A DNA stretch of 64,000 nt from Anolis carolinensis. Taxonomy: Eukaryota. Below, piece by piece: positions 11,273-54,200 of the stretch. Location of the stretch: NCBI RefSeq assembly GCF_035594765.1, contig NW_026943824.1, positions 8,574,317-8,638,316 of the forward strand. The letters run 5' to 3'. Within the stretch, counting starts at the first letter, position 1. Each line of letters starts with the position of its first letter. The translations under genes were made by a program, and so were the position numbers. The notes under the pieces were generated by a model, which ran no database searches, was not told the origin of the DNA, and saw nothing but the letters and a program-made list of their open reading frames with translations.

Positions 11273-14051
11273 TATGCTGATGCCTCCCTTTACTATATAG
11301 TGATATAATGTTGTTTGGGCTATACAAAAACTAATATTCCGTCAACGTACAGCTATTAGAGGATATGATTCTGAACAAGAGAACCCTGAACACTTTAACT
11401 CCTTATATCTTTTAGGTAGTCTTCTTCATCTTTTCCAGGATCTTCTTCGAACCTAACTGGAGTAGATCTGGACCACTGAATCAATGTTAATTGTTCCACA
11501 TTTGATTTTAATGTAGGGCAAACATCAATAAATGAAGAAGAACGTGAGACAAATGTTTATTTTCAGTCTACAATGATAATGTATAATAATAAAATACATA
11601 GTGACTAACATATATGATGGAAATAGATATATGGAATGTAATGCAAATGTTTAAATCCTTCCAAATAATTGTAAATGTAAATATAAATGTAGGGCGTATT
11701 GGTGACCTAGATTCTAGGACCTAGAATCAAAACCGGGTTGATTTTTCCTTTCAGATTTCCATTTAAAGTCAGATGTTATTCATCCCCTCTGATGTGTCAT
11801 GGAAACATAGTGATAAAGTGTAGTACTCATAATGTTTGAAGTATGAAAACATAAAAATAGCTAGAGAAGCTACTATGAAATGAGCTTCTCCAATCGGATT
11901 ATAAAACTAGAAACACTAACTTTGTGCATTTTAAATAGACTATAATCTCTTTTATCTGTTTTTCATCAGTAATTGATCTGGGTGGAATTTAAGACTCTTC
12001 AGAAGCAAACTGGGTCATTTTATTCTGTTTAGCAGATAGGCCTTAGTACTTAGTGGCGTATCAACATCAAATGCATAAAACTTTTATAATTTGTGTCCCA
12101 ATGCATAACAAAAGGTCATTTATACTACTACAGCCAGGTTGCTCCAGCCAGAATTGGCTAGGGAATTTAGGGACTTGTATACACTAAAGCAGAGCTTTCC
12201 AAACTGTGTGTCACATTACGTTAGTTTGTTCCCTGCAGTGTGTAGCTGTGTCACATGAACATAACAAGACACGTATGGTGTTACCATAAAGCCACAGGTT
12301 GCTTGAAGGCACATATATCCACATATGCTAAAAACGTATTATTCCCCACATACTCGCTTTTTCATCCAAGTAAAGAAGTGGCAACTTTTCTTACACACAT
12401 CTACACACCCAAACAGTCACAAAAATCACATCTCCAAGACCGGAGATCAATACCAGGCCTTTAATGATAATTAAAGTCCTTTTCTCATCTCCCTCCTCAC
12501 CCATCAGGTCCTTCAGGCAAAACCTTGGCAACAGTCTTATTAAAGCTAATTGAGTCAGTCAGACTCGTAATACCACAAGAAGAACTGGCTTTCATTAATT
12601 AGCCAGATGTCTCGATGTTGGAGGAAGTACATTGGCAATTTAACAAGCCTACTTTTACACAATGTTGTAAAGAGCAAATACAACTTCTGAGGATAGATCT
12701 TTCAAAGCACTGTGAAAATAATAAACATAAAATATACATGTTGAGTTGCTACTTCACCACAGCAATATAAATCCAGGGCTTAGTTTCCGGTAAACATTTA
12801 AAATGATATTGAAGGCTCATTAAGTATCCATAAAGAGAATAAAACATTAATTCACAGCACTGAGTATGTACACAACATAAACACAGGCAATGTTATCTAC
12901 AGAGCTCAGAAAATTTGCCTTTTAAATGGATTGCTCTTAAACTTATTTGGTAGTCCAGGAATGATAATTCCAAGAAGGTAAATTTTCAAAGATCCATTTG
13001 TGTCAGAATTAGTGTATCAGTGTTATAAGAATAAAAGCGGAGCACAACCTCTCTCCTTTCCCATTCCTTTTTGTTTTAGAAGGTAATCTTGATTAATCAT
13101 ACCTTGTAATATTTCACAGATTAAAACAGGGCCATTTGTGGCCATGCATCATTGGTCAAGACACAGATATTAATAGGAAAAAAACACACAAGCTAGGAAA
13201 TAATCTAGAAGTCGGCTTTTGTTTAGTATGAATGCTGAAGGTGCATCCACACAATTGTCCATGGTTACCAAAGGTGTTTCAAAATGCGCCAGCAATGAAG
13301 AGGTTCCACAAATCTTTTCCCACCCCTTGTGGTTTTGATGGCCACAGTTTTCAAAGGATGACTCACCATCTGTTGAATTTAATAACTGGAGAACTGTACG
13401 CAACATTGGCATATTACTGTAACTTCACAGCCTCTCTTTTCCAGTCAATGTTACTTCAATTATATGAACTGTATCACATTAAAACAATGCAGATTCAAAG
13501 ATGCTCCAAAAAAAAAAAGCTATGACCTTTTTGGGATGATTCTAATACAATTCAACAATTGCTACTCCATCTCAAATGAATGCTGCAGGTGCATCCACAC
13601 CACGCAACTGTAGTACTTTAATATCACTTTAAGTGCCATGGCTCTGTCCTATGAAACCGTCAGTCGTTTGGTGAGGGCTTAGACTCCTCTATCAGAAAGC
13701 TATAGTCCTACAGTTCCCCAGGAGCAAAGAACATAATTTTTTTGTACTGCACCAAACTACAGATCTCATGTTTCTACGCTGTGGACATTCACTGCTGGAC
13801 TTCATTCATTCCAGCCTGTGTCTGTTGCTGTCATCAAACTCAGCATGGAAAAGCAGGACAAGAAAATCAGGAACCAAAGCATTTGAAATGGAAATGGAGT
13901 AAATAGCTCAAGCAGCACTGCTGTAAAAAATGCCATCCTTTTAATAACGAAAGCACTAGAACTTCCCAGATTTGGGAAATACATATTTAATTTAAAAATG
14001 AGAATGGTTACATTAAAATAAACTCTACAGAATTGTCATTAGTAAAGTAGA

Positions 14052-14221
14052 TCAGGCAAACAGTTTATTTTCAAGCTTAAATTTCCTCACATGCATTTTT
14101 ATAAGGCCAATTATAGTTTCATTACCAAACATTTCTGCAAGTTGCAATGGTGTTAATCCTCCCATTGGACTTTGTACATCAGCAGTGGCATTCAGCAATA
14201 AATAGCAAATTCCCAGATGCC
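14052..14221 (-). CDS. Terminal ankyrin-repeat exon (GHLGICYLLLNATADV...GLTPLQLAEMFGNETIIGLIK...FA*)
   Basis: CAG acceptor in phase 1; GHL..LL and TPLQLA motifs; TGA stop. Confidence 0.87.
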
Positions 14222-17200
14222 CTGAACGGATATGAAACAAAGAAAGTGAGAGAGGGACAGATTGATTAACTTTTAAAATATAATGTATTTTATGAAGTAA
14301 TAGGGTTTCCCAACACATTTTTTGTCCATCTAACATAGAGGGCCTAAGGATTCCCAAACGGAATATTAAGATATTTACCCAAACTGTTGGGGAGTCCAGA
14401 AGAACCTCAAATACATCTGAAATTGTTACACTACATCCGAGGTCCTAATGCAATTATAGTTGTGTGCTATAGAATATTCTGCCAAATGGTTAATTATCCC
14501 TGACCCCTTATTCCATTTATTTCTGGAAAAACCTCTATCTCCACATTCTTAAAGTTCCCATTAGTCTTATCAAATAAAAATACCTGGATACTGATATGCA
14601 TAGGTCCCCCATCAGGAAAAAGCCAGAGTATAATTGAATAAATAAATAAGGTCTCCTTGAAATGACAAACAGGAGCTAGAGGGAATAGTTTTCATCCAGT
14701 ATAATAAAAAATACTTGATTTCCCAAGTCAAAGTACTGCCCTTGCAGTCAGAAGTGTGTCCCCTCAAAAAGACATCGATTGTATCCCATTGAAAAGCTCT
14801 ATCAACTTGTCTAATCTAGCCTTTAAAAAAGACGATGGTGCAATCTATGCACTCCTTTGTTACTGCAAAACTAAAGTGCTGGCCTAATATTTAATCTGTT
14901 AAAATATTTATATTCCAGCATTCTGCCTAACAACCAACCTCCAATAAGGGAGATTAAATGTACAACAACATAGGAAGTTCTTTTTGAAAGGAAGTGATGA
15001 CTTAAAAAGCTCTGAAGAAGTAAAGATGAAACATGTCCATGACCTTGGGCCTCAGATAAATAAAAACGTATTGGCAAGTAATACTAAATGAAATAAAATG
15101 GCCCAAAATATTACCATAAACAATAGCAAAATGTAGAGGTGTTGCTCCATCACACTGTGGATTTTGGACATTCACATTTATACCAGGGTAATGCAAAAGC
15201 AAAGAGACGAGATGCATTTTCCCAGTGTTTACAGCGGCATGAAGAGGTGTGTTTCCATTTTCTGATGCTTGGTTTACATCAGGTATAGGAAATGCCTAGA
15301 GGAAGAGAAGGAAGAGAAAGGGACAAAGCAAGAAATACATACAATGTTGTTCCTTAACCCGCTCCTAAACCCCTCCTTGGGTTCCCTCCAGAAGCTCATT
15401 TCGTTCCCATTATTCTTTGGTGATTATATAATACAATAAAAGTACCCTAAAGGGCTCACAAGTCAGTGCCACTGTGTCCTATGGGATTTACATGCAGGTA
15501 AATGTGTATGCAGCATTAATACATTTAATTCCTCCTAATATTAGCAGAGATCGAAAAGGGTAAATAGAACAAAATCTACACTACTGACCATTTCCAGGAA
15601 ATAATCCAAAATCTTAGACTGATCATATATAGTGGCTAAAAATAAAAGGTTTCTGTTTTTTTCATCCACAACACCAAGATCCAGCTTTTGGCTTCTAACA
15701 AGATAATCCAAGACATCCGGGTATCCCAGCTGAACTGCCTGGAGAGCTCTGAGGAGAAACAAAGCAAATATGCCAACAGTTAACCCTGGATGGAACAGAA
15801 TGCCAAAAAAGCAAAAGACTTTGCATAATTTACTTTTCTAAAGAGATTGATTGGCAATGGCCATTTACATTTCTAAGATCTTTACTCAGAAGCAAAGAAT
15901 ACCAAGGACAGTGAGACCGAAACCCTCGGTCAGAGGAAGAGCTAATCTAACTAAAAGAATCAGATTGAGATAACCTGTTGCGATTGGTCATATTCATAGT
16001 ATCATGTCTTTCTAAGGCTTCAAGGTACCAAATATCAGTTTAGAAGAGGCATTCTTCTTTGTCCCACATAATAGACAAAAGACCCCTTAAAGGCACTAGA
16101 TCATGTCTGTTCTTAGACATACACACAAAAATAAATGTGCATCTTCTAAAAAGAAAACCAGTATCCAAATAATAATTTTTATTCACCAATTAATCCGTTC
16201 TTTAACTGATCAAGTCAGATTTCTTGGTGCTGGCAACAGTTTCTTCCATTTTGCATCTGAGAATCAGACAAAACATCCTTGGCTGCAATGCAGCACCTCA
16301 GATACAGTTCCCTAATAGACTTGTCCATGAACAGAGGGATCTTTCTGAACATGTAGAGTATTTTTGGTTACAAGAAACAGCAAGAAGCCCCCATCCAGTC
16401 AGCTCTGGAGTGTTCCCCAGACACCTGGCTCAGCCTCCTTTCTTTAAGAGTAGATCGTCTTTTCCCTGGTGTGATATGATGCAAGCTTATGGCAAGACTG
16501 AGCAACATCTGGGGGTGGTAAATAAGTTTGTGTATACACACAGTATGCCAGTTGCAGAATGCTAAGGCAGCTCTGTTTTCCAAAGAAAAATGTCCTGAGA
16601 GGGCACACACTGGCCAAACCATTAAAAGAATGCCCACTGCTAAATATGCTAAAATTTAATGAGATCTGTAGGCGGACTCAAATACTAAAACACTGGTATT
16701 TGGGCAAGCTACATCAGACTAAATAGCCTCTTTGTCAGATTAATGGAATATTCAAACAAATACTAATTTGGTCTTTCATAAGTTCAACCCTCAGAGATCC
16801 CAGTAAGCACAACAAATGAATAGTGAGACTGAGTTGGAAGTCCCAAACATTGAAAATCTGTGATATCGACTATAAACCAGTAGCTAGGCAGAACAAGAGT
16901 AATTTTTCAACTTGCTACATAGTTCTGAAACAATGGCTCCCCTCCCAATATTATTGGACTGCAACATGCATCAGCCTTAGTAGTATCAATGTTGAGCCAG
17001 CATTTAACTATTGCTGGAAAGCCACATTTTCTACCCTGATGCAGCTCTTACATGGCCATGCTCTCTTTGACCTCATTGACCTTGTGCCATAGATCTTGCA
17101 AGCCCTAGTCACTCTCACTATCTGAATGTCCAATGTTACATGAAAGCAGAAGGAAAAATCAGAACAAAATAGATTCTTGTGTCCAGTTACACAAGATAAG

Positions 17201-20200
17201 ATCAAAGAATGACAAAGGTGAGAAGCAAGATAGAAAAAGGCAAGATTGTTTAGTGTTCATCAAGATTTTATTTTTTCTTCTTTTCAATAGTTTATTTTAA
17301 AAAATAACAGTAGCACAAGCAAATATGTAGTTTCTACAGCTCATACATCATGCTGACCATTCTAATAGTAAGAGAAAGGTTTTGGATTAAGATATATTTT
17401 AGGTGACATTGGAATGTTGGGAAACTGAAAGACATTTCTTTTAAAAACCCAATATTGAAATAGACTTCAAACTTTTGGCCTCTATCTCCCTCCTGTGGTG
17501 CAAGTAGGCAATTCCCAGACCGGTTTCAAAAAACTAGTAGTTCTGTAGATTCCGAATTTGTTCCCATTTGCTACTGCTTGACTGAATTGAAAAATGCAAC
17601 TGTTAATATAGTTTCCCATGACGTATAAATGTTGACCACATTTGCACAGCAAAACAAGTCATGGTGTGGTTTGCTAACAATTGACATGTTATGAAATACA
17701 AATCTTTCTCTGCTAACAAAACATTTTTCTAGCACTCACAAACCACAATCTGAATCCATAGTTAACGGTGAGCTTACAAAGGATGGCTTATGATCCAACC
17801 CACAACTGTGGCTTTTTTCTTTTTCTACTCAAGTCAGAAACATAGGCAGGCAAAAGAGACAGGAGATGAACAAATAGAATCATATAGTGTTTGCCTGTCT
17901 GTCGTGCAATTTGGGATATAAAAACACAAACCATGGATTATCAAGACATGCAAATGTTGAAATGAAAGAGCCATGTTCACCCAGAGCTAGATGGAGACAA
18001 TTAGCAAAACATAACAAATGACCAGATTTATGGAGCAAGAGGTGAATGGTAGATTACTGTATTAAAGAAATGTTTTCACTGCTGAAGGGGTTGTATGTCG
18101 TGTGTTAGGATCAAGGCAATTATGATCTTTTTAAAAAATCAGTGTAGACAAGATCTCAGTTACGTATGGCAAAGTAGCTTCAGTCTCATGCAATCTTATA
18201 GTGATTTAGCTATGCTGATCCCAGAAGCATCAACAACTATTAAGGATATGTAAAAATCTCAGTTTTTCTACTGCCTGGAGTATATATTTTTTATAGAAGA
18301 GAAAACCTAACAAATGAAACTAGCAATGAAAATAAAAACATTGATAGTGTATTGTGACCTTTAGTGTTACATACAAAATTGAGTACAGGCACATATTTAG
18401 TTCAAGGTTATTTGAAAGTATTAATTTGCAGATAATGTCCACAATCCAACAAAAGTCACTCCCTTGTGCAAGTTCTGTAGAAAAGAATTGATTTTAATGC
18501 ATGTCCCCAGTGATTTCATAAAGCAGTGTAACATTTGTATCAGTTCTATAATAAGGAAATAAGGAAAACACACTACTTAAGGAATTCCTTTTCTAAAGTA
18601 TGCTTACCTTTCTTTAACCACTTCATTGGATTGCTTTCTATTGGCAGAAACAGAACTCTTGTCAGGTTGTTCAGAAGACTGCTGGGTATGGACCAATGTC
18701 TTATAGAACTGAATTTTAAAAAGCACGACATTTAGTGAGCAATCTTATATCTTAATTCCAATTCTGTCAATACTTTGGAAACATACACTTAAAAAAAATA
18801 AAACCACTGAATGCTTTTGCATCATTTTATATAAAGAAATCCCCTTTATCTTAAAATTATATGCAGGCTTGCTAAGGAACCATTTTGTTGTATTTTGATA
18901 GAATCTTAGCTTGACAGTGTAATAAAATTGATTTTATGAAATACACACAGATGTTCCAAAAGTAGAAGGTGCCAGCTTTACAAGTACGTTATAATCTAAT
19001 CCATAACTTAATTAAATTGAACCATCTGAAGTTTTGTTGACAATATATAACTCTTTTAACATAGCAGGATTTGAAGGTGAGCATTCAAAGAACCTGGAGA
19101 CCTGGTTGAGATTCAACCATATACTTTGTCTCCCAACTGGTTTCTAGTTATTTCAGCATCAGCCATTGATGTGAAAAGGTTTTGAGAAGAGTGAATAAGT
19201 ACAGTTTATAAACAGTAAACAAGGAAACTGGCTTACTACCATTATAGCCAAACAAACTGTTAAAACAACTTGCACAAGATGAGGTTGAATACAGCACTTC
19301 CCTTAAATTCTTCAGTTTAAAAGTGATGTTAAGTCATACTGTCACAAATTTCAGCAAATCCATTCCATTCAGCTCTACTGGAATATTTCAAGTGTTTAAT
19401 CATCAAATTCAAGTCAAGGATACAGTTTGCATTAAAATACAAGTACATCAAATCCATTCATCAAGACACTTTTGAAAGAAATGCTATAAAGTTACATATG
19501 TATATACACACAGATTTTAAGCAAAGCCAAGAGAGTCATTGCAAGCATACCCAGCAGTCTTCGAATCCATTTTAATATGAAGACAGGTGTGCTGTGTAGC
19601 ACTGCTTTTCAAGAAAAAGAAACTCAAAGTCCCCTGGCTTGCAGAACAAACTGTGTCATTCACTGGATTCCAGTCCTAATAATTCATTGCACAGATCTTT
19701 AAAAGCTGTTGCAGCTCAAATTCTATTTTTCACAGCAAAACACTAAAGACCAAGAGCCACCTCCTTTTCCCCAAATGCTTGAAGACAGGGCTTTGGAATA
19801 CATGATGTTGTAGTTTCTAATTTCACTATGTTCTAACTGGACAGGCCCACTTCTGAGGAATTATGGGAACAGCAGATCACCAACATCTGCAGTTCCACAG
19901 ATCCCCCAGTCCTGATTCAAGAGGTAAATATTCCCATTGGCTCCTGCAGTCTAGGTCTCCATCTTCAGAGGTTTTGTCAAATACAATTTAATACAACAAG
20001 CACACAGGTTTTTTTCAAGCAGAGATGCCATTCAGGGAGAGATGAGGTGCTTCAACTGACATCCAATACTGTAAAATACATGTGATTATTCTTTAGAAGC
20101 ACTTATGCCACACTTATGAAGAGGCACACAAGAACAGCAGACACTGAAAGCTGACACTTTAGAATATAAAATAAACAGCCACCCTGGAATCTTAACTCCA

Positions 20201-22144
20201 GACCCCTACTGAAACTGACAAAGGTGCCTCTTCTTAAGCAATACCTAAATGCATCATGATGATGTATCTGTTTGTGAATATCAAATGACTTAACACCAAG
20301 TAATAGTTATAAAGCCAGTTATGTTTTGCAGAAAACAGGATTATGTGATCATGCCTTCAGCATATTACAAGAAGTTTCTTGAATATTCTTCAAAAAGAAA
20401 TTAATTAGTGAAGACAGTTAACAGCATTGTCAGGATCTACACAATAAGCAGAGAAGAGATTTCCAGATAATTTTACTATCACAGCTCTATTAAGGAATAG
20501 TGCTTGGGAAGGCTATTTTTAGCCCCCAGAATTTCCAAACCATCAGAATGTGCAGTTGTTACCACTAAAAAATCTCACAGTGTAAACAAAGGCAGCTACA
20601 TTTAGAAATGACCCTTCAACAACAGCCAAAATCAGAGATACACGTCATGTTTATAAGTCCCTAAATTACTTCAGGAATGGTAGTATATGCTCACAGTAAC
20701 ATGCACAACAGGGTTGCACAGAACAGAAAGCAGGAATTTGGTGTTTTTTTTTTACCATGTGTAAATATGATGAAAAATTGATATGTACTACCATCACATG
20801 CATGAAACAGATCACAGTACTGCAGCATTCAAATACATCCCTGTAATATGATGTATATTCTATGTTAATTCACAAGTGATTCTACAGAGAGGGCAATCTA
20901 TGGCCCCACAGACATTTCAGATTTACCCATCCAGCCAAGCTATTGGGAAAAAAGTATGGAGGCTACTGCTGAAACCCCATTGAGGGCCATAAGCTCCCAC
21001 CTAATGATAGCAGGATGGGGTCCTAAAGACTGTTTTCCAGTCTCCAGTCATTTTGTAACCCCAATGTTATCCAAAAGGCTTGAAAAGCAACCAAAATATT
21101 TCCATAATATCTAACAGCTAAAAAGTATTCTGACATTTCACTGTAATGCTAACTTGGTAATGCTATTCAATCTCAATTGTCTAGGTTCTTAATAAAAACA
21201 CATTACCAAATAAAAATAATTAAAGTACTTCATCTTGGCACCTGGTGGATTTTAAAACAACCTTGCAGGGAATACATAAAATAATCATAATTAGCATTTC
21301 TGAACTACTGTGTTTTTACCTTCACTATTGCTTGCCAAAGACTGGCGAGTGCAAATGCTCGTATAGCTAGCAACCACTGAGTTATTTGAGGGTTCTTGAT
21401 TGTGTACTGTATGTTTGAAAGCATTTCCTTATATTCAGATGCATCTACTGAAGACATGAGGTTTAAGTAGTCAAGAAAAACTAATGCATTCTGGTTGTTC
21501 AGAAGTCCCATGTGATATTCACTGAGTGAAGCAGCAAGAATAGAGTTCAACTCTGAAGGCTGGATTTCATTGGAGTCTGGTCCCTCAAGAAACGCAAGGC
21601 GAACTTCATCCTCGATAACTCCCATTTCCAATTCCAACAGTTGTTGTTTTTGATTTAACTGGAGCTCAGACAGCCAGAAATGTGCAAAGTGAACAAAGTT
21701 GTCTCCAGAACAACTCCATTCCCCCATCTCACTAATGAGGTTTTGGGCTGTATCCAGCCAGCCCGCCACTGCAGTACTATCAAAATTATTAAAGTGCTTC
21801 TCAAATAGATCTTTTTCTGGGGAAAAAAGCACACCAAGTGATTCCTTGGAGAAAGCAACTCCACTTGCCCCTCCACTCTGATGGGGTGATGCTTTTTTGC
21901 CAATATGAGGCAGCGGGACAGCTTTAAAAAGAGAACAGTTCCTGATCTTGAGAGAGAAGAACTCCTTTTGCAAATGATTATTATCCACTTGAGAGCTTTT
22001 CACTAATGAACAGATATTTGGAAGATGAAGGATCTCATTCTGTTGATTCAGGGCATTTTTATGTAGCTGCTGATGTCCTAAATCATCTTCCTGTTCCATA
22101 TTAAAACAGATATGCATCATTCGCCTGTCCTCCAAGCTCTGCAT
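14052..22144 (-). CDS. FAM220A: FAM220A-family protein with C-terminal ankyrin repeats, 478 aa; join of 22144-21320, 18708-18608, 15748-15589, 15295-15115, 14221-14052
   Basis: All four introns are GT-AG with compatible phases (0,2,0,1); CDS is 1437 nt with no internal stop; first coding exon C-terminal half (EIQPSELNSILAASLSEY...VFLDYLNLM...EYKEML...LLAIRAFALA) matches recalled human FAM220A; syntenic position. Confidence 0.8.
15115..15295 (-). CDS. Ankyrin-repeat exon (DVNQASENGNTPLHAAVNTGKMHLVSLLL...DGATPLHFAIVYG)
   Basis: Long polypyrimidine tract + TAG acceptor, G|GTAATA donor; two canonical G-x-TPLH motifs. Confidence 0.9.
15589..15748 (-). CDS. Ankyrin-repeat exon (ALQAVQLGYPDVLDYLV...NRNLLFLATIYDQSKILDYFLEM)
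   Basis: TTTCTCCTCAG acceptor, GTCAGT donor; degenerate ankyrin consensus. Confidence 0.82.
18608..18708 (-). CDS. FAM220A-ankyrin linker exon (FYKTLVHTQQSSEQPDKSSVSANRKQSNEVVKE-R)
   Basis: TTCAG acceptor, AG|GTAAGC donor; phases 0/2 bridge the neighbouring exons. Confidence 0.72.
21320..22144 (-). CDS. FAM220A: FAM220/SIPAR-domain coding exon (275 codons; unspliced read-through gives 279 aa ending at 21305)
   Basis: Long ORF with FAM220A-like C-terminal motif; AAG|GTAAAA donor at 21320/21319. Confidence 0.88.
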
Positions 22145-22200: not shown

Positions 22201-24650
<2,450 letters not shown>

Positions 24651-24745
24651 TGCTTTGCTTTCCTCCAATGACACCTGCCCCAGTTTGGCGCCTAAAATCT
24701 CCTCCCCTTTGCATGAATTGGCCCTTTTGTACATTAATAATAATA

Positions 24746-25066
24746 CAGTAGAGTCTCACTTATCCAACACTCGCTTATCCAAGGTTCTGGATTATCCAAC
24801 GCATTTTTCTAGTCAATGTTTTCAATATATCGTGATTTTTTGGTGCTAAATTCATAAATACAGTAATTACTACATAGCATTACTGCATATTGAACTACTT
24901 TTTCTGTCAAATTTGTTGTATAACATGATGTTTTGATGCTTAATTTGTAAAATCATAACCTAATTTGATGTTTAATAGGCTTCTCCTTAATCTCTCCTTA
25001 TTATCCAACATACGTATTCGCTTATCCAACGTTCTGCCGTCCCGTTTACATTGGATAAGTGTACTG
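24746..25066. mobile_element. Tc1/mariner-type MITE (about 320 bp)
   Basis: TIR CAGTAGAGTCTCACTTATCCAA (right TIR partly deleted), TA TSD; 5 copies in window. Confidence 0.85.
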
Positions 25067-25262
25067 TAATAATAATAATATCAATATTAATATTACAGTA
25101 TAGTGTCATAGTACAATATAGTAATATATAATGCTCATATTGTGCTATGTTAATCATATAGCATATTGTATATACATATAATTTGTAAGCTGCTCTGAGT
25201 CCTCTTCAGAGTGAGAAGGGCGAGATATAATTGTAGAAAATAAATAAATAAGAATACTAATA

Positions 25263-25503
25263 AGGAAGCAGCCAGGCTTTGAAGCTGCAAGGCTATTCAA
25301 TGCTACTCAAGCTAGCCAATTGCAACATTCACAGGCAGTCAAGAGGTCTTTCTCCCACCCTTGACATTCCACAGATAAATAAACCCCACTTGCCTCGTTT
25401 CCAACACAACCCCTGAGGATGCCTGCCATAGGTGTGGGCAAAACGTCAGGAGAGAATGCTTCTGGAACATGGCCAGACAGCCTGGAAAACTCACAGCAAC
25501 CCA
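25263..25503 (+). mobile_element. Penelope-like repeat fragment (GAAA box mutated)
   Basis: Homologous to the 8300-8453 unit. Confidence 0.6.
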
Positions 25504-25790
25504 ATAATAATAATAATTGATTACCTGCCTCTCCTCATAGATTGAGGCAGGTTACAACATACTAATAATAATAATAATAATAATAACAATAATATATCTG
25601 CCTCTCCTGATAGCTTGAGACGGGTTATAACAAAATCGTAATAATAAAAATAATTATTTATTGCCCACCTTTCCTGATAGCTTGAAACAGGTTACAGCAA
25701 AGTAGTTAATAATAATAATAATTTTTTACCTACCTCTCCTGATAGCTTGAGGCGGGTTACAGTAAATAATAATAATAATAATAATAATTT
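25504..25790. repeat. Minisatellite of four hairpin + (AAT)n units
   Basis: Unit approximately ACCTGCCTCTCCTGATAGCTTGAGGCAGGTTACA separated by AAT repeats. Confidence 0.75.
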
Positions 25791-26259
25791 ATTGGGTTGC
25801 TGTGAGTCTTTCAGGCTGTATGGCCATATTCCAGAAGCTTTCTCTCCTGAGAAATTTAAGGACCAAAAGGCCATGAAGCCCAGTTTTTCACAGTTTGCCA
25901 CTTTGTGTCTCTTTAAGAAATTAAAAAGAGACATTATAATAGCAATAACAACTAATAATGTTTATAGTGAAGGTGGTGGCAACATGCCATATATCATCAG
26001 ATATCTTTTACTTCGTACTATTTAAAAAATACAACAAATAAAAAGGGTGGGGGTGTTGTATTCATCACCATGGACATTATTGCTCTGATCTTGTATATTC
26101 TCTGTCGTTCTGTCTCAGATTTTCCAGAATGACATCAGCATGATTCTTCTTGCAATCCACACCCACATACAGTAATTTTGCTGCTTTCCTGCCAAGATAC
26201 ACAATGCAAAGCCAATATAAAACTAAACTTCCTCAACTACACTCCTGCTCACTTCAAGC

Positions 26260-26739
26260 GAGGCTCGAGGATTGCCGGAAACACACGAAGAGCCGTACAA
26301 TTCCGGAGGAAAAATCCCCCCCCCCCCATCCTGAATATTCCTGGCACAGAAAACGCACGGCGGCCGAATCTTTCCGAACATTGACGAACGCCGCCTTAGG
26401 CCAGGATCTGCCTGAACGGAGGAGAGACTTGGCTTCCGGATATGACCGAACTCTCCCGAAGGCCTTCATCGAAGGGGCGGGGATTAAACGAAGAGGGGCC
26501 GAGTGTTTCCGAAGCTCTCCCATCCCTCCTCAGCGGCCTGGAAGACTAGGCCGGAAAGTGGAGCTCGAGCCGGAAGTGAGCGGGGCGGCCGCTTCCTGTT
26601 TCCTTTCGAGCGCCACACTCCTCCGCCCCGCGTTTAGGGTGGTGGCTGTTCCCTCAGCAGGGCTTTCGGCGGTTATTTGCCCCTCAGCCGCCTCGAGGCC
26701 CACACTCTTCTCGACGAAGCCTCACAGAGAGCCGCCCCG
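26260..26739 (+). promoter_or_regulatory. RAC1 CpG-island promoter and 5' UTR
   Basis: CpG-rich; ETS-type CCGGAAGT near 26570 and CCGGAA near 26551; GGGGCGG GC boxes; leads into the RAC1 ATG. Confidence 0.75.
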
Positions 26740-42043
<15,304 letters not shown>

Positions 42044-51200: not shown

Positions 51201-54200
51201 TTAAAATGGGATTTCATCTGCTGAATTATGGAAAATGAATTCTAGCAGGCAAATCCTCAAGCAGATCCTTTTCAAATGTTACATGGCATGCAGCAGTGTT
51301 ATTGCTCAATAGGCTTCTACAGTGAACATTAATACTAATGTTTTATGTAGTTTAATAGATTTGTTGAATGGTTTTATTGGTTTCGACTATGTATCTTTAA
51401 TATTTCTATGTTAATGTTTATATGTGTTAGGTTTTAATTCACACATTGTTATGGTTTCCGTGATAGTTGCTTTGAGTCTCCTTTGTCAGAGAAAAGGTGG
51501 GGGTATACATATTAATAATATAAATGTTACTACTGTTGCTAATAACTTGCTATATTTTTTTAATGTATAGGCCAACCTACCAGTCACCTTTAAGCTTACA
51601 GAGTCCTGTAAAAGGGTTTGTCATGATATAATAGGGCCAACCATAGGTAGCCGCAGCAAACTTCATATAATGAGCAGCATTTTCCAGTTCTTCATCCAAA
51701 TCATTTGCCTGGGAAATGGAGACAAAATGCAATCTGTAGCAGCCTGCTGTTTCTGGTTCAAAATCAGTCTGTTATGTCAACAATGTGGCCATAAAATGCT
51801 AAAAGGGGGAGAATCCTGCAGCCGATGGCACATTTATCAGACCCAAGGTCTGTAGGCCAAATCCAGCCCACCCTGTCCTCCTCCAGATGCTGGACTACAA
51901 CTCCAATTCGACCTCATGACTAGAGTGGGTGGGAGTTGGGATACAGGAATATCTGGGAGGCTGCAGTGTGTTCTGTTTAGTCAGGAAAGGGGGGGTTGCA
52001 TTTAGATACAATATAAATAAATATAAATATATTTATATATTTATATAAATACTGTAAATATATAATATTTACAAATATAAATACTGTAAATAAATAAATA
52101 AAATAGATATAAGGCTTATGGGTATGATGTCTGACATTAAAATCCTCCTCAACCTTTCCCCAACCTCAGAGCTACATGTGCTGTTGGGTTGCCATTCCCA
52201 TCATCCCCAATGCACATGGAGAATAATCATGGAACCTATGGGCTCCATGTTGCCCTGAATCCACATTGCCATATAACACGGTTCAATGTGGATTTTATAA
52301 ATCTGTGTGGAAGGAGCCTTTGTTTTCTGAAGCAGCAAATGCTGGGAGGCAGCAGGAATTGGGAGGAAAGAGCTCTCCATCCCTTTAAGGAAGGCAACTG
52401 CTCTCATGCAAAGTGAATGGCGCAGTCCCATCTCCAATATCAGAAAAGGAGAAGATTCAACAGTTCAGCCCAGTGGGGTGATGCCTGGAGATGGCCCTGA
52501 GGAACGTACCACAGGAGACAGTGGCGACTGCGTGAGAACATCATCAGGCTCTTTAGGGCAGTTTTCCACTTTATCTTGCTCTTGGTGAAGCAGAGTCAGG
52601 CCTGCTGCCACATCGCTAGGCACCAAGTCAGTATCCTGCAGAGAAAAAAGAAACACATTACTGTAGGATTGGGGGGGGGGGTGGATTCAAAGCATTCTGT
52701 GCAGCTTCTTGGAGACAGCAAGAATCTTTTTGGTTGGAATGTGTTTTATACACAGGCATACATAAACAAATATAACAAATATACCAAATAATTGCTGTAT
52801 ATACTCGAGTATAAGCCTAGTTTATCAGCCCTTTTTTAAGATTGAAAAAGCCCCCCTTGGCTTATACTTGGGTGAGGGTCTTGGTTGGCTTATATTTGGG
52901 TCAGCTTATACTCGAGAATATATGGTACATTTATTATTTTTCTCTATTATTGTTGCTACTATTACATTTATTTTACTCTAAGGTAAAAAGGTAAAGGTTT
53001 CCCCTGACGTTAAGTCTAGTCATTTCCGACTCTGGGGGTTGGTGCTCATCTCCATTTCTAAGCTGAAGAGCCGGCGTTGTCCGTAGACACCTCCAATGTC
53101 ATGTGGCCGGCATGACTGCATGGAACGCCATTACATTCCCGCTGGAGCGGTACGTATTGATGTACTCACATTGGCATGTTTTCGAACTGCTAGGTTGGCA
53201 GAAGCTGGAGCTAACAGAGGGCGCTCACTCCACTCCCCGGATTTGAACCTGGGACTTTTCGGTCTGCAAGTTCAGCAGCTCAGCGCTTTAACACACTGAG
53301 CCACCGGAGGCTCCTTTTATTTTACTCTATTTATTATTACATGTATTATTTTCCTGTATTTATTATTATTATTATTACATGTATTATTTTACTCTATTAT
53401 TATTAAAAGGATACATAAGCACATTTACATTGAAGATGATGAGAATAATGATTTGATCAGAGTTGGACAGTCTTATCTTAAATTTGAGCTTTATGTAAAT
53501 ATTCAAAAACATTTACCCTACTGATGCCTCAGTTAATGTAATTTTATTGGTATCTATTTTTATTTCTGAAATTTACCCCCCCCGGTTTATACTGGAGTCA
53601 ATGTTTTCCCAGTTTTTTGTGGTAAAATTAGGTGCCTCAGCTTATATTCGGGTCGGCTTATGCTCGAATATATACGGTATTTTAAAAACGTCTTCCTTCT
53701 TACTGCAAAATAGCTGCGGAAAAGCTCAGCGATGCTTGTAAAAGCCACTCGGTGGTCATCATCCTGCACGATGCAGCAACACAGCAAGCGGATTCTTTTC
53801 TCCCAGACGCGAGTTGCTGTCTTCTTGACATTGTAAAAGAGCTGGTCGGACTGACTGCTCTCCAGGTTGCGGTTGGGGCAGTGAGCCACGTAGAGCATCT
53901 TCTTCCCACCAAGAGGATCAAAGACGACCACAATGGCCACCACAGTGAAGACAATGATCACCCAGCTGCCAAGGAGAACAGGACATCAGAGCCAGTCAAG
54001 GAGGACATACGGGCACCCCCCCCCTCCATTTTTTGGGTGTCAAAATTGCATTTTTGTTTTCCTTGCCTAATAGTTTCACCCCCATTTGAAGCTGATTCTC
54101 CCTTCCTTCTCCAAAGGCAAGGCAGTTTAAAAACTACAAACTCTGATGGGCGTCTACGAGATGGGAGTCTCCTTACCTGGCAATGACTGTTCCAAATATA

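Follow-up and report, generated by a model that had tools for sequence, protein, structure and literature searches.

Human FAM220A is a protein of ~259 amino acids (aa) that is encoded in a single coding exon and is not known to contain ankyrin repeats. Truncated isoforms arising from read-through of a weak splice donor combined with intronic polyadenylation are known for other genes, as in soluble FLT1 and secreted IgM. Under the name SIPAR, FAM220A has been reported to bind STAT3 and to recruit TC45 (reviewed in PMC6032216), and the title of Ueda 2009, a paper cited in PMC12807706, presents the mouse protein ACPIN1 as acrosomal; both reports concern the short protein. According to HGNC, human SMIM10L3 is nested in the 5′ untranslated region (UTR) of FAM220A, and the entry cites two-frame work on the mouse Acpin1 mRNA (PMC12807706). 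Here, we describe the FAM220A gene in a 64,000-nucleotide (nt) stretch of the Anolis carolinensis genome (hereafter, the window). It shares with human and mouse FAM220A the Pfam family and the bicistronic mRNA with SMIM10L3 in its 5′ part (PMC12807706); it differs from those proteins, described as a STAT3 repressor (PMC6032216) and an acrosomal protein, in its five ankyrin repeats. We read this gene—with a probability of about 0.72—as the anole orthologue of an ancient FAM220-ankyrin gene in which a weak donor gives rise to long and short RNAs, and whose ankyrins were lost repeatedly.

A five-exon FAM220-ankyrin gene

The gene comprises five coding exons of 825, 101, 160, 181, and 170 nt on the minus strand (Table 1), amounting to 1437 nt or 478 aa with zero internal stops. 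Its introns (2611, 2859, 293, and 893 nt) are all of the GT..AG type with a pyrimidine tract, the exons end in phases 0/2/0/1, and ATTAAA signals lie downstream of exon 5 at 13986 and 13940; the window sequence contains no N. Left unspliced, exon 1 continues for four codons (VKTQ) past the donor at 21320 and stops at 21305, which yields 279 aa. A preliminary description of the locus had proposed both a phase-0 donor four codons ahead of the stop of the FAM220 reading frame and four further exons joined to it in frame, and both were borne out.

Window exons were searched individually and joined only to check the reading frame. In this exon-wise scan, exon 1 matched Pfam FAM220 (PF15487) with E=1e-59 and 202.7 bits against a gathering cut-off of 27, and Pfam Ank matched exon 4 (Table 1) and, more weakly, exons 3 and 5. 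For full-length, fold, and tree work, we used the 478-aa A. sagrei RefSeq protein (P0003) as a stand-in, which matches all five window exons at 89–95%. Its AlphaFold model (predicted template-modelling score [pTM] 0.76) consists of a disordered segment (1–105), a helical core (112–284), a low-confidence linker (285–301), and five helix pairs (302–477), in line with the proposed order of FAM220 domain, polar linker, and about five ankyrin repeats. A single predicted helix (252–284) would run across the first exon junction, as had been anticipated. Together with the Pfam hits and the structural matches given below, the five helix pairs identify the tail as tandem 33-residue helix-turn-helix ankyrin repeats, and the pTM of 0.76—reached despite 99 disordered residues—suggests that core and ankyrins are held in a fixed geometry.

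Table 1 Coordinates of FAM220A features and of the upstream SMIM10L3 frame in the window
Feature	Position	Strand	Description
Coding exon 1 (aa 1–275)	21320..22144	-	Disordered N-terminus with LP-x-I motif, then helical FAM220 core; from Pfam, orthologue AlphaFold model, and motif count
Weak donor AAG/GTAAAA and read-through VKTQ-stop	21305..21319	-	Yields the 279-aa short form
Probable 4-kb 3′ UTR of the short form	17267..21304	-	Would include unspliced intron 1, exon 2, and part of intron 2; ends near AATAAA signals at 17291 and 17267
Coding exon 2	18608..18708	-	End of the long core helix (F276) and polar linker
Coding exon 3	15589..15748	-	Ankyrin repeats 1–2
Coding exon 4	15115..15295	-	Ankyrin repeat 3 and start of repeat 4; Pfam Ank E=2e-12
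Coding exon 5	14052..14221	-	End of repeat 4, repeat 5, stop
SMIM10L3 (SAGSIN1) upstream coding exon, first 65 codons	24292..24486	-	Pfam DUF4560 E=3e-34; phase-0 donor; CpG island
SMIM10L3 tail (6 codons and stop) with which the FAM220 exon begins	22201..22221	-	56 nt ahead of the FAM220A ATG

Long and short RNAs from one weak donor

We mapped contigs of four anole runs from four studies, which we took to be RNA, to positions 15510–21500. Such contigs drop minor isoforms, cannot fix RNA ends, and measure expression poorly by their depth; they show presence, not absence. Of the proposed junctions, 18608>15748 was seen in two runs (X1 and X8) and 15589>15295, from exon 3 into exon 4, appeared as a loose end in X1 and X14, whereas 21320>18708 was not seen in the contigs of the four anole runs and has its counterpart in the newt; 15115>14221 lies outside the mapped stretch. 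The deepest anole contigs pass unspliced through the donor at 21320, and in all four runs the unspliced contigs end at 17281–17457, 10–170 nt from the AATAAA pair (Table 1). A common anole RNA thus probably encodes the 279-aa form and carries a 3′ UTR of 4 kb. Run X1 also suggested an earlier RNA end, at 21117, which we discounted because a single-nucleotide polymorphism at 21116 can break a contig.

In the newt, both forms are present: one contig (L001) carries the entire long frame in spliced form, while others (L005–L008) read through the same donor and stop three codons on, with 16 contigs encoding the short protein versus 1 the long. In the anole, contigs contain the short form and the later junctions, and we infer the first. 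The read-through short form looks like the commoner RNA in both animals. The same weak donor, followed by a stop within 3–5 codons, recurs in A. sagrei, Sceloporus, the Tasmanian devil, and the newt.

If FAM220A were a single-coding-exon gene and the 478-aa models over-joined, the Anolis long form would be vestigial, or the ankyrin exons would make up a separate, ankyrin-only gene. Part of the anole data speaks for this and weighs against the joined gene: besides the missing first junction and the unspliced deep contigs, those contigs that contain junction 18608>15748 also include the end of intron 1. Minor isoforms are, however, just what contigs drop, and neither a start codon nor a CpG island serves exons 2–5. 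Moreover, intron 1 has retained its frame, donor, and acceptor in animals from newt to marsupials, a joined mRNA exists in the newt, and the first residue of exon 2 (F276) completes the core helix. A chimeric X1 contig, in which exon 3 (15681) is joined to 17 nt of exon 1 (21346–21362) in opposite sense at a 12-nt near match, is probably a fold-back library artefact; as it links exons 1 and 3 at a microhomology whose sites lie 196 nt apart when spliced and 2807 when unspliced, it argues weakly in the same direction. Overall, a vestigial long form or a separate ankyrin gene appears very improbable.

An animal-wide architecture under constraint

All four intron positions and phases are identical in A. 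sagrei and the Tasmanian devil, and the Sceloporus exons and splice sites match as well; the broken exons in close relatives that would speak against the model were not encountered, the splice sites of A. sagrei and Sceloporus being intact. Pooled over exons 3–5, the ratio of nonsynonymous to synonymous substitution rates (dN/dS) was 0.106 in the comparison with A. sagrei and 0.116 in that with Sceloporus, with 0.057 for exon 4. By this measure, which the preliminary description had suggested applying to squamates, the ankyrin exons are under purifying selection. The core gave higher values (dN/dS 0.28–0.38, against 0.11 for the ankyrin exons) and may be loosening in iguanians. As a separate observation, codon 211 (21514–21512, minus strand) reads His in the window; 96% of animal homologues, A. 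sagrei among them, have Pro at this position, and Sceloporus has Arg.

FAM220-ankyrin proteins of 445–496 aa are annotated in A. sagrei, Sceloporus, Pogona, lacertids, snakes, a gecko, and several turtles, and ankyrin forms occur in six marsupials (koala, devil, opossum, possum, glider, and wallaby; 478–480 aa in four of them). A profile search with the core returned 215 representatives, and an ankyrin-tail profile matched 60 of the 73 homologues that have ≥100 aa after the core. Named carriers include a sponge (Corticium), Nematostella, Hydra, Hydractinia, a soft coral, and a jellyfish; further carriers are a rotifer (Brachionus), molluscs, Lingula, a nemertean, an acorn worm, a crinoid, amphioxus, the coelacanth, and the newt. 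In a quick tree, in which the A. sagrei row represents the window gene, vertebrates formed a single clade (support 100) that contained the mammals (97), and the whole appears to be one orthologous family. By these matches, FAM220 plus ankyrins is an architecture found across animals and already present in databases. The expectation that lizards retain an ancestral FAM220-ankyrin protein therefore holds as to ancestry and fails as to lizards, the combination extending from sponge to marsupials.

The order of events may be read from amphioxus, where residues 241–368 (core end, linker, and first ankyrins) lie in one exon and which has, of the anole introns, just the last two. This argues that the joined protein is ancestral and that the intron permitting truncation was, most simply, a vertebrate gain.

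Database coverage is uneven. The best protein match to the window (97%) is an Ensembl A. carolinensis model of 268 aa (P0001) without ankyrins, so that automated annotation did miss the long form in this species, as had been suspected, whereas RefSeq has it for many relatives. The FAM220A ‘isoform X1’ entries of RefSeq/UniProt (A. sagrei, 478 aa; Pelodiscus, XP_025034302; Petaurus, XP_068941006; Latimeria, XP_005998434) have the same domains, length, exon structure, and CYTH3/RAC1 position as the window gene and show no difference of substance from it. These entries are unnamed or misnamed (SAGSIN1, SMIM10L3, or ‘RIPK4-like’) and are not described in the papers searched, among which we found none on FAM220A with ankyrins. 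Some turtle and marsupial models (P0013, P0042, P0035, P0039, and P0044) run from exon 1 to exon 4, or from earlier exon-1 donors to exon 2.

Probable repeated loss and erosion in short-only lineages

Short FAM220A proteins were found in platypus and echidna, which share an odd end, and in ostrich, tinamou, and a third bird-like sequence; a crocodile model is also short and may be incomplete. In platypus, exon 1 is frameshifted near its end, and what remains of exon 2 is a relic that is itself frameshifted, with its GT changed to TT, while 7.4 kb of gapped tinamou DNA contained no trace of exons 2–5. A 252-aa protein (P0231) falls inside the mammal clade, apart from both marsupials and monotremes; the FAHFWL motif is missing from it, as is the last core helix. 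As marsupials keep the ankyrins while monotremes and palaeognath birds are short, several separate losses are to be assumed; there would have been at least two in mammals and one in birds, provided that P0231 is placental. Two points weigh against this history: the bird loss rests on the three short, degenerate proteins and the gapped tinamou DNA, and the placental short form is represented only by the placental-like P0231, assigned by its tree position—no named placental FAM220A was found by word search or among the best 150 representatives.

The short-only proteins appear to be not just truncated but also eroded. Out of 33 positions conserved in the core, 25–29 are kept in long-form vertebrates, 17–19 in birds, 18–19 in monotremes, and 14 in P0231; the short-only lineages sit on long branches in the tree; and the residues E173, E209, and R262 are lost in birds, monotremes, and P0231. 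The idea that mammalian FAM220A is a truncated remnant thus fits insofar as the short form is derived and the platypus exons have decayed, and needs amending in that six marsupials are long, erosion accompanied truncation, and losses were several. Likewise, decayed ankyrin exons, expected for mammals in general, are represented by the platypus relic, whereas those of the devil are intact.

Alternatively, the short form might be a selected tetrapod product, for instance the STAT3/TC-PTP adaptor SIPAR or an acrosomal protein, which the short-only lineages adapted. The conservation of weak donor and adjacent stop from newt to marsupial would fit this, as would the open frame of 250–280 aa in birds, monotremes, and P0231 and the reported binding of STAT3 and recruitment of TC45 by SIPAR (PMC6032216). 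Base composition, however, makes intronic stops close to a GTAA donor frequent; neither F276 nor the last part of the main helix is present in the stump; the short-only lineages lose different invariant residues, P0231 being without the FAHFWL motif; and the cited SIPAR evidence comes from overexpression in a melanoma line. We regard adaptation of the short form as doubtful, albeit the least so of the alternatives considered here.

A conserved helical core without a solved relative

F276 is 96–97% conserved across animals, and since it is encoded in exon 2, truncation to the short form removes a conserved part of the core. Modelled alone, the core reached a mean predicted local distance difference test (pLDDT) score of 93. 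Fold searches with it returned no Foldseek match at E≤0.001, a best Z of 6.3 with VIA, TM≤0.37 in the Atlas, and no match to a PDB sequence profile; weak resemblances to filovirus VP30 and HEPN were rejected as generic helix bundles. An Atlas feature search likewise gave nothing for the core, and ankyrins only for the whole protein. The five-repeat stack superposes on designed ankyrin-repeat proteins (DARPins) at ~2.2 A over 160 residues. In this stack, the window gene resembles ankyrin-repeat adaptors and DARPins; it differs from them by its N-terminal partner, the FAM220 domain.

Two short motifs recur in the disordered part: DLRxxIxxSR, of invertebrate type and within the first 20 aa of the homologues, in 78 proteins, and LP[PHS][ILV], 20–65 aa before the core, in 63 of 119 (3.7 by shuffling). 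No paper was found on this LPPI-type motif. Taken together, these features make it fairly probable that the protein is a non-enzymatic adaptor that would join two partners, with core and ankyrin stack acting as one unit.

One consideration runs counter to an adaptor role: E173, E209, and R262 are 99–100% conserved across 122 cores and could be catalytic. The core might then have a new fold and act as an enzyme or bind a ligand, with the ankyrins recruiting its substrate. The confident model without PDB or Atlas match would be compatible with this, and the loss of the three residues in birds, monotremes, and P0231 would mean that short-only lineages carry a dead enzyme. Yet the core has no His/Cys/Asp cluster or known catalytic motif, its conserved positions are mostly hydrophobic, and buried salt bridges would account for the Glu and Arg residues equally well, making an enzyme unlikely.

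A proposed history of FAM220A

Our favoured explanation is that of one ancient animal gene, whose product combines a disordered N-terminus carrying short docking motifs with an all-helical core of the FAM220 type and a stack of five ankyrins. In vertebrates, as the tetrapod data show, the last core helix came to be interrupted by an intron and the SMIM10L3 frame to precede FAM220A on the same mRNA. The weak donor and adjacent stop would produce a spliced 478-aa RNA and a commoner read-through RNA, polyadenylated in intron 2 and encoding the 279-aa stump. A stop upstream of exon junctions marks an RNA for decay, and because four junctions follow the SMIM10L3 stop on the long RNA but the short one has none after it, nonsense-mediated decay should tip the balance towards the short RNA. 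The ankyrin exons would then have been lost independently in monotremes, in birds, and probably in placentals, the core would have decayed, and human FAM220A/SIPAR would be a fixed, eroded stump.

Like soluble FLT1 and secreted IgM, the short form would end in a composite last exon, in which the frame stops soon after entering the intron and a poly(A) signal follows, so that C-terminal domains are removed. It differs in that FAM220A is cut inside a helix of an intracellular domain and that the short form is seemingly the sole form in several lineages. What is added here is the history, in which a protein found across animals already had a read-through isoform and the resulting stump was fixed and eroded more than once; the architecture itself is already in databases. 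This would be a case of an RNA isoform that existed first and later became the sole form, more than once.

For the little-studied human gene, this changes the reading, as work on FAM220A/SIPAR has used what is apparently a clipped and eroded remnant, and knock-down of FAM220A mRNA also affects SMIM10L3. The original function is best studied where the protein is intact, that is, in lizards, turtles, marsupials, Nematostella, or Hydra, and the core offers a confidently modelled domain without a solved relative. A bolder version, which we put forward as speculation and consider rather unlikely, is that this sponge-to-marsupial protein contains an undescribed core fold, possibly an enzyme, that a microprotein gene took over its promoter, and that the resulting decay preference let three warm-blooded lineages drop the ankyrins in parallel. 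Human FAM220A/SIPAR would then not truly regulate STAT3 but be a passenger frame, in decay, that is carried on the SMIM10L3 mRNA.

Genomic setting and the SMIM10L3 frame

The exon at 24486–24292 splices to 22221, placing a 71-aa SMIM10-family microprotein upstream on the FAM220A mRNA (Table 1). In newt contigs L001 and L005–L008, the spliced SMIM10L3 frame precedes both long and short FAM220A forms, and devil and platypus have the same acceptor and SMIM10L3 tail; the arrangement is absent near the amphioxus gene. A RAC1 exon lies at 34719 (plus strand) in the window, and CYTH3 is located downstream of the gene in Sceloporus, CYTH3 itself not being found in the window. The RAC1/CYTH3 neighbourhood and the SMIM10L3 leader identify the window gene as the FAM220A orthologue. 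Annotated SMIM10L3-FAM220 fusions (P0021, P0024, and P0048) were rejected as gene-model artefacts, as a stop in the following exon closes the SMIM10L3 frame in all RNA contigs observed, and so was a FAM220-CYTH3 fusion (P0049).

A CpG island at 24001–24750 contains the upstream SMIM10L3 exon. Across 24001–26750, two such islands lie ~1.5 kb apart, with SMIM10L3/FAM220A and, probably, RAC1 head-to-head. Between the SMIM10L3 stop and the FAM220A ATG, an out-of-frame ATG opens a 29-codon frame (22190–22101, minus strand) that overlaps the FAM220A start; it could reduce FAM220A translation and is missing from another lizard contig. An Rfam search of 7900–8600 gave no hit at E≤1, a result that minimal hammerhead ribozymes might escape. 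Elsewhere in the window are a DAGL-like exon at 53922 and, at 62098–63060 on the minus strand, a fragment of a reverse transcriptase of the long interspersed nuclear element (LINE) type.

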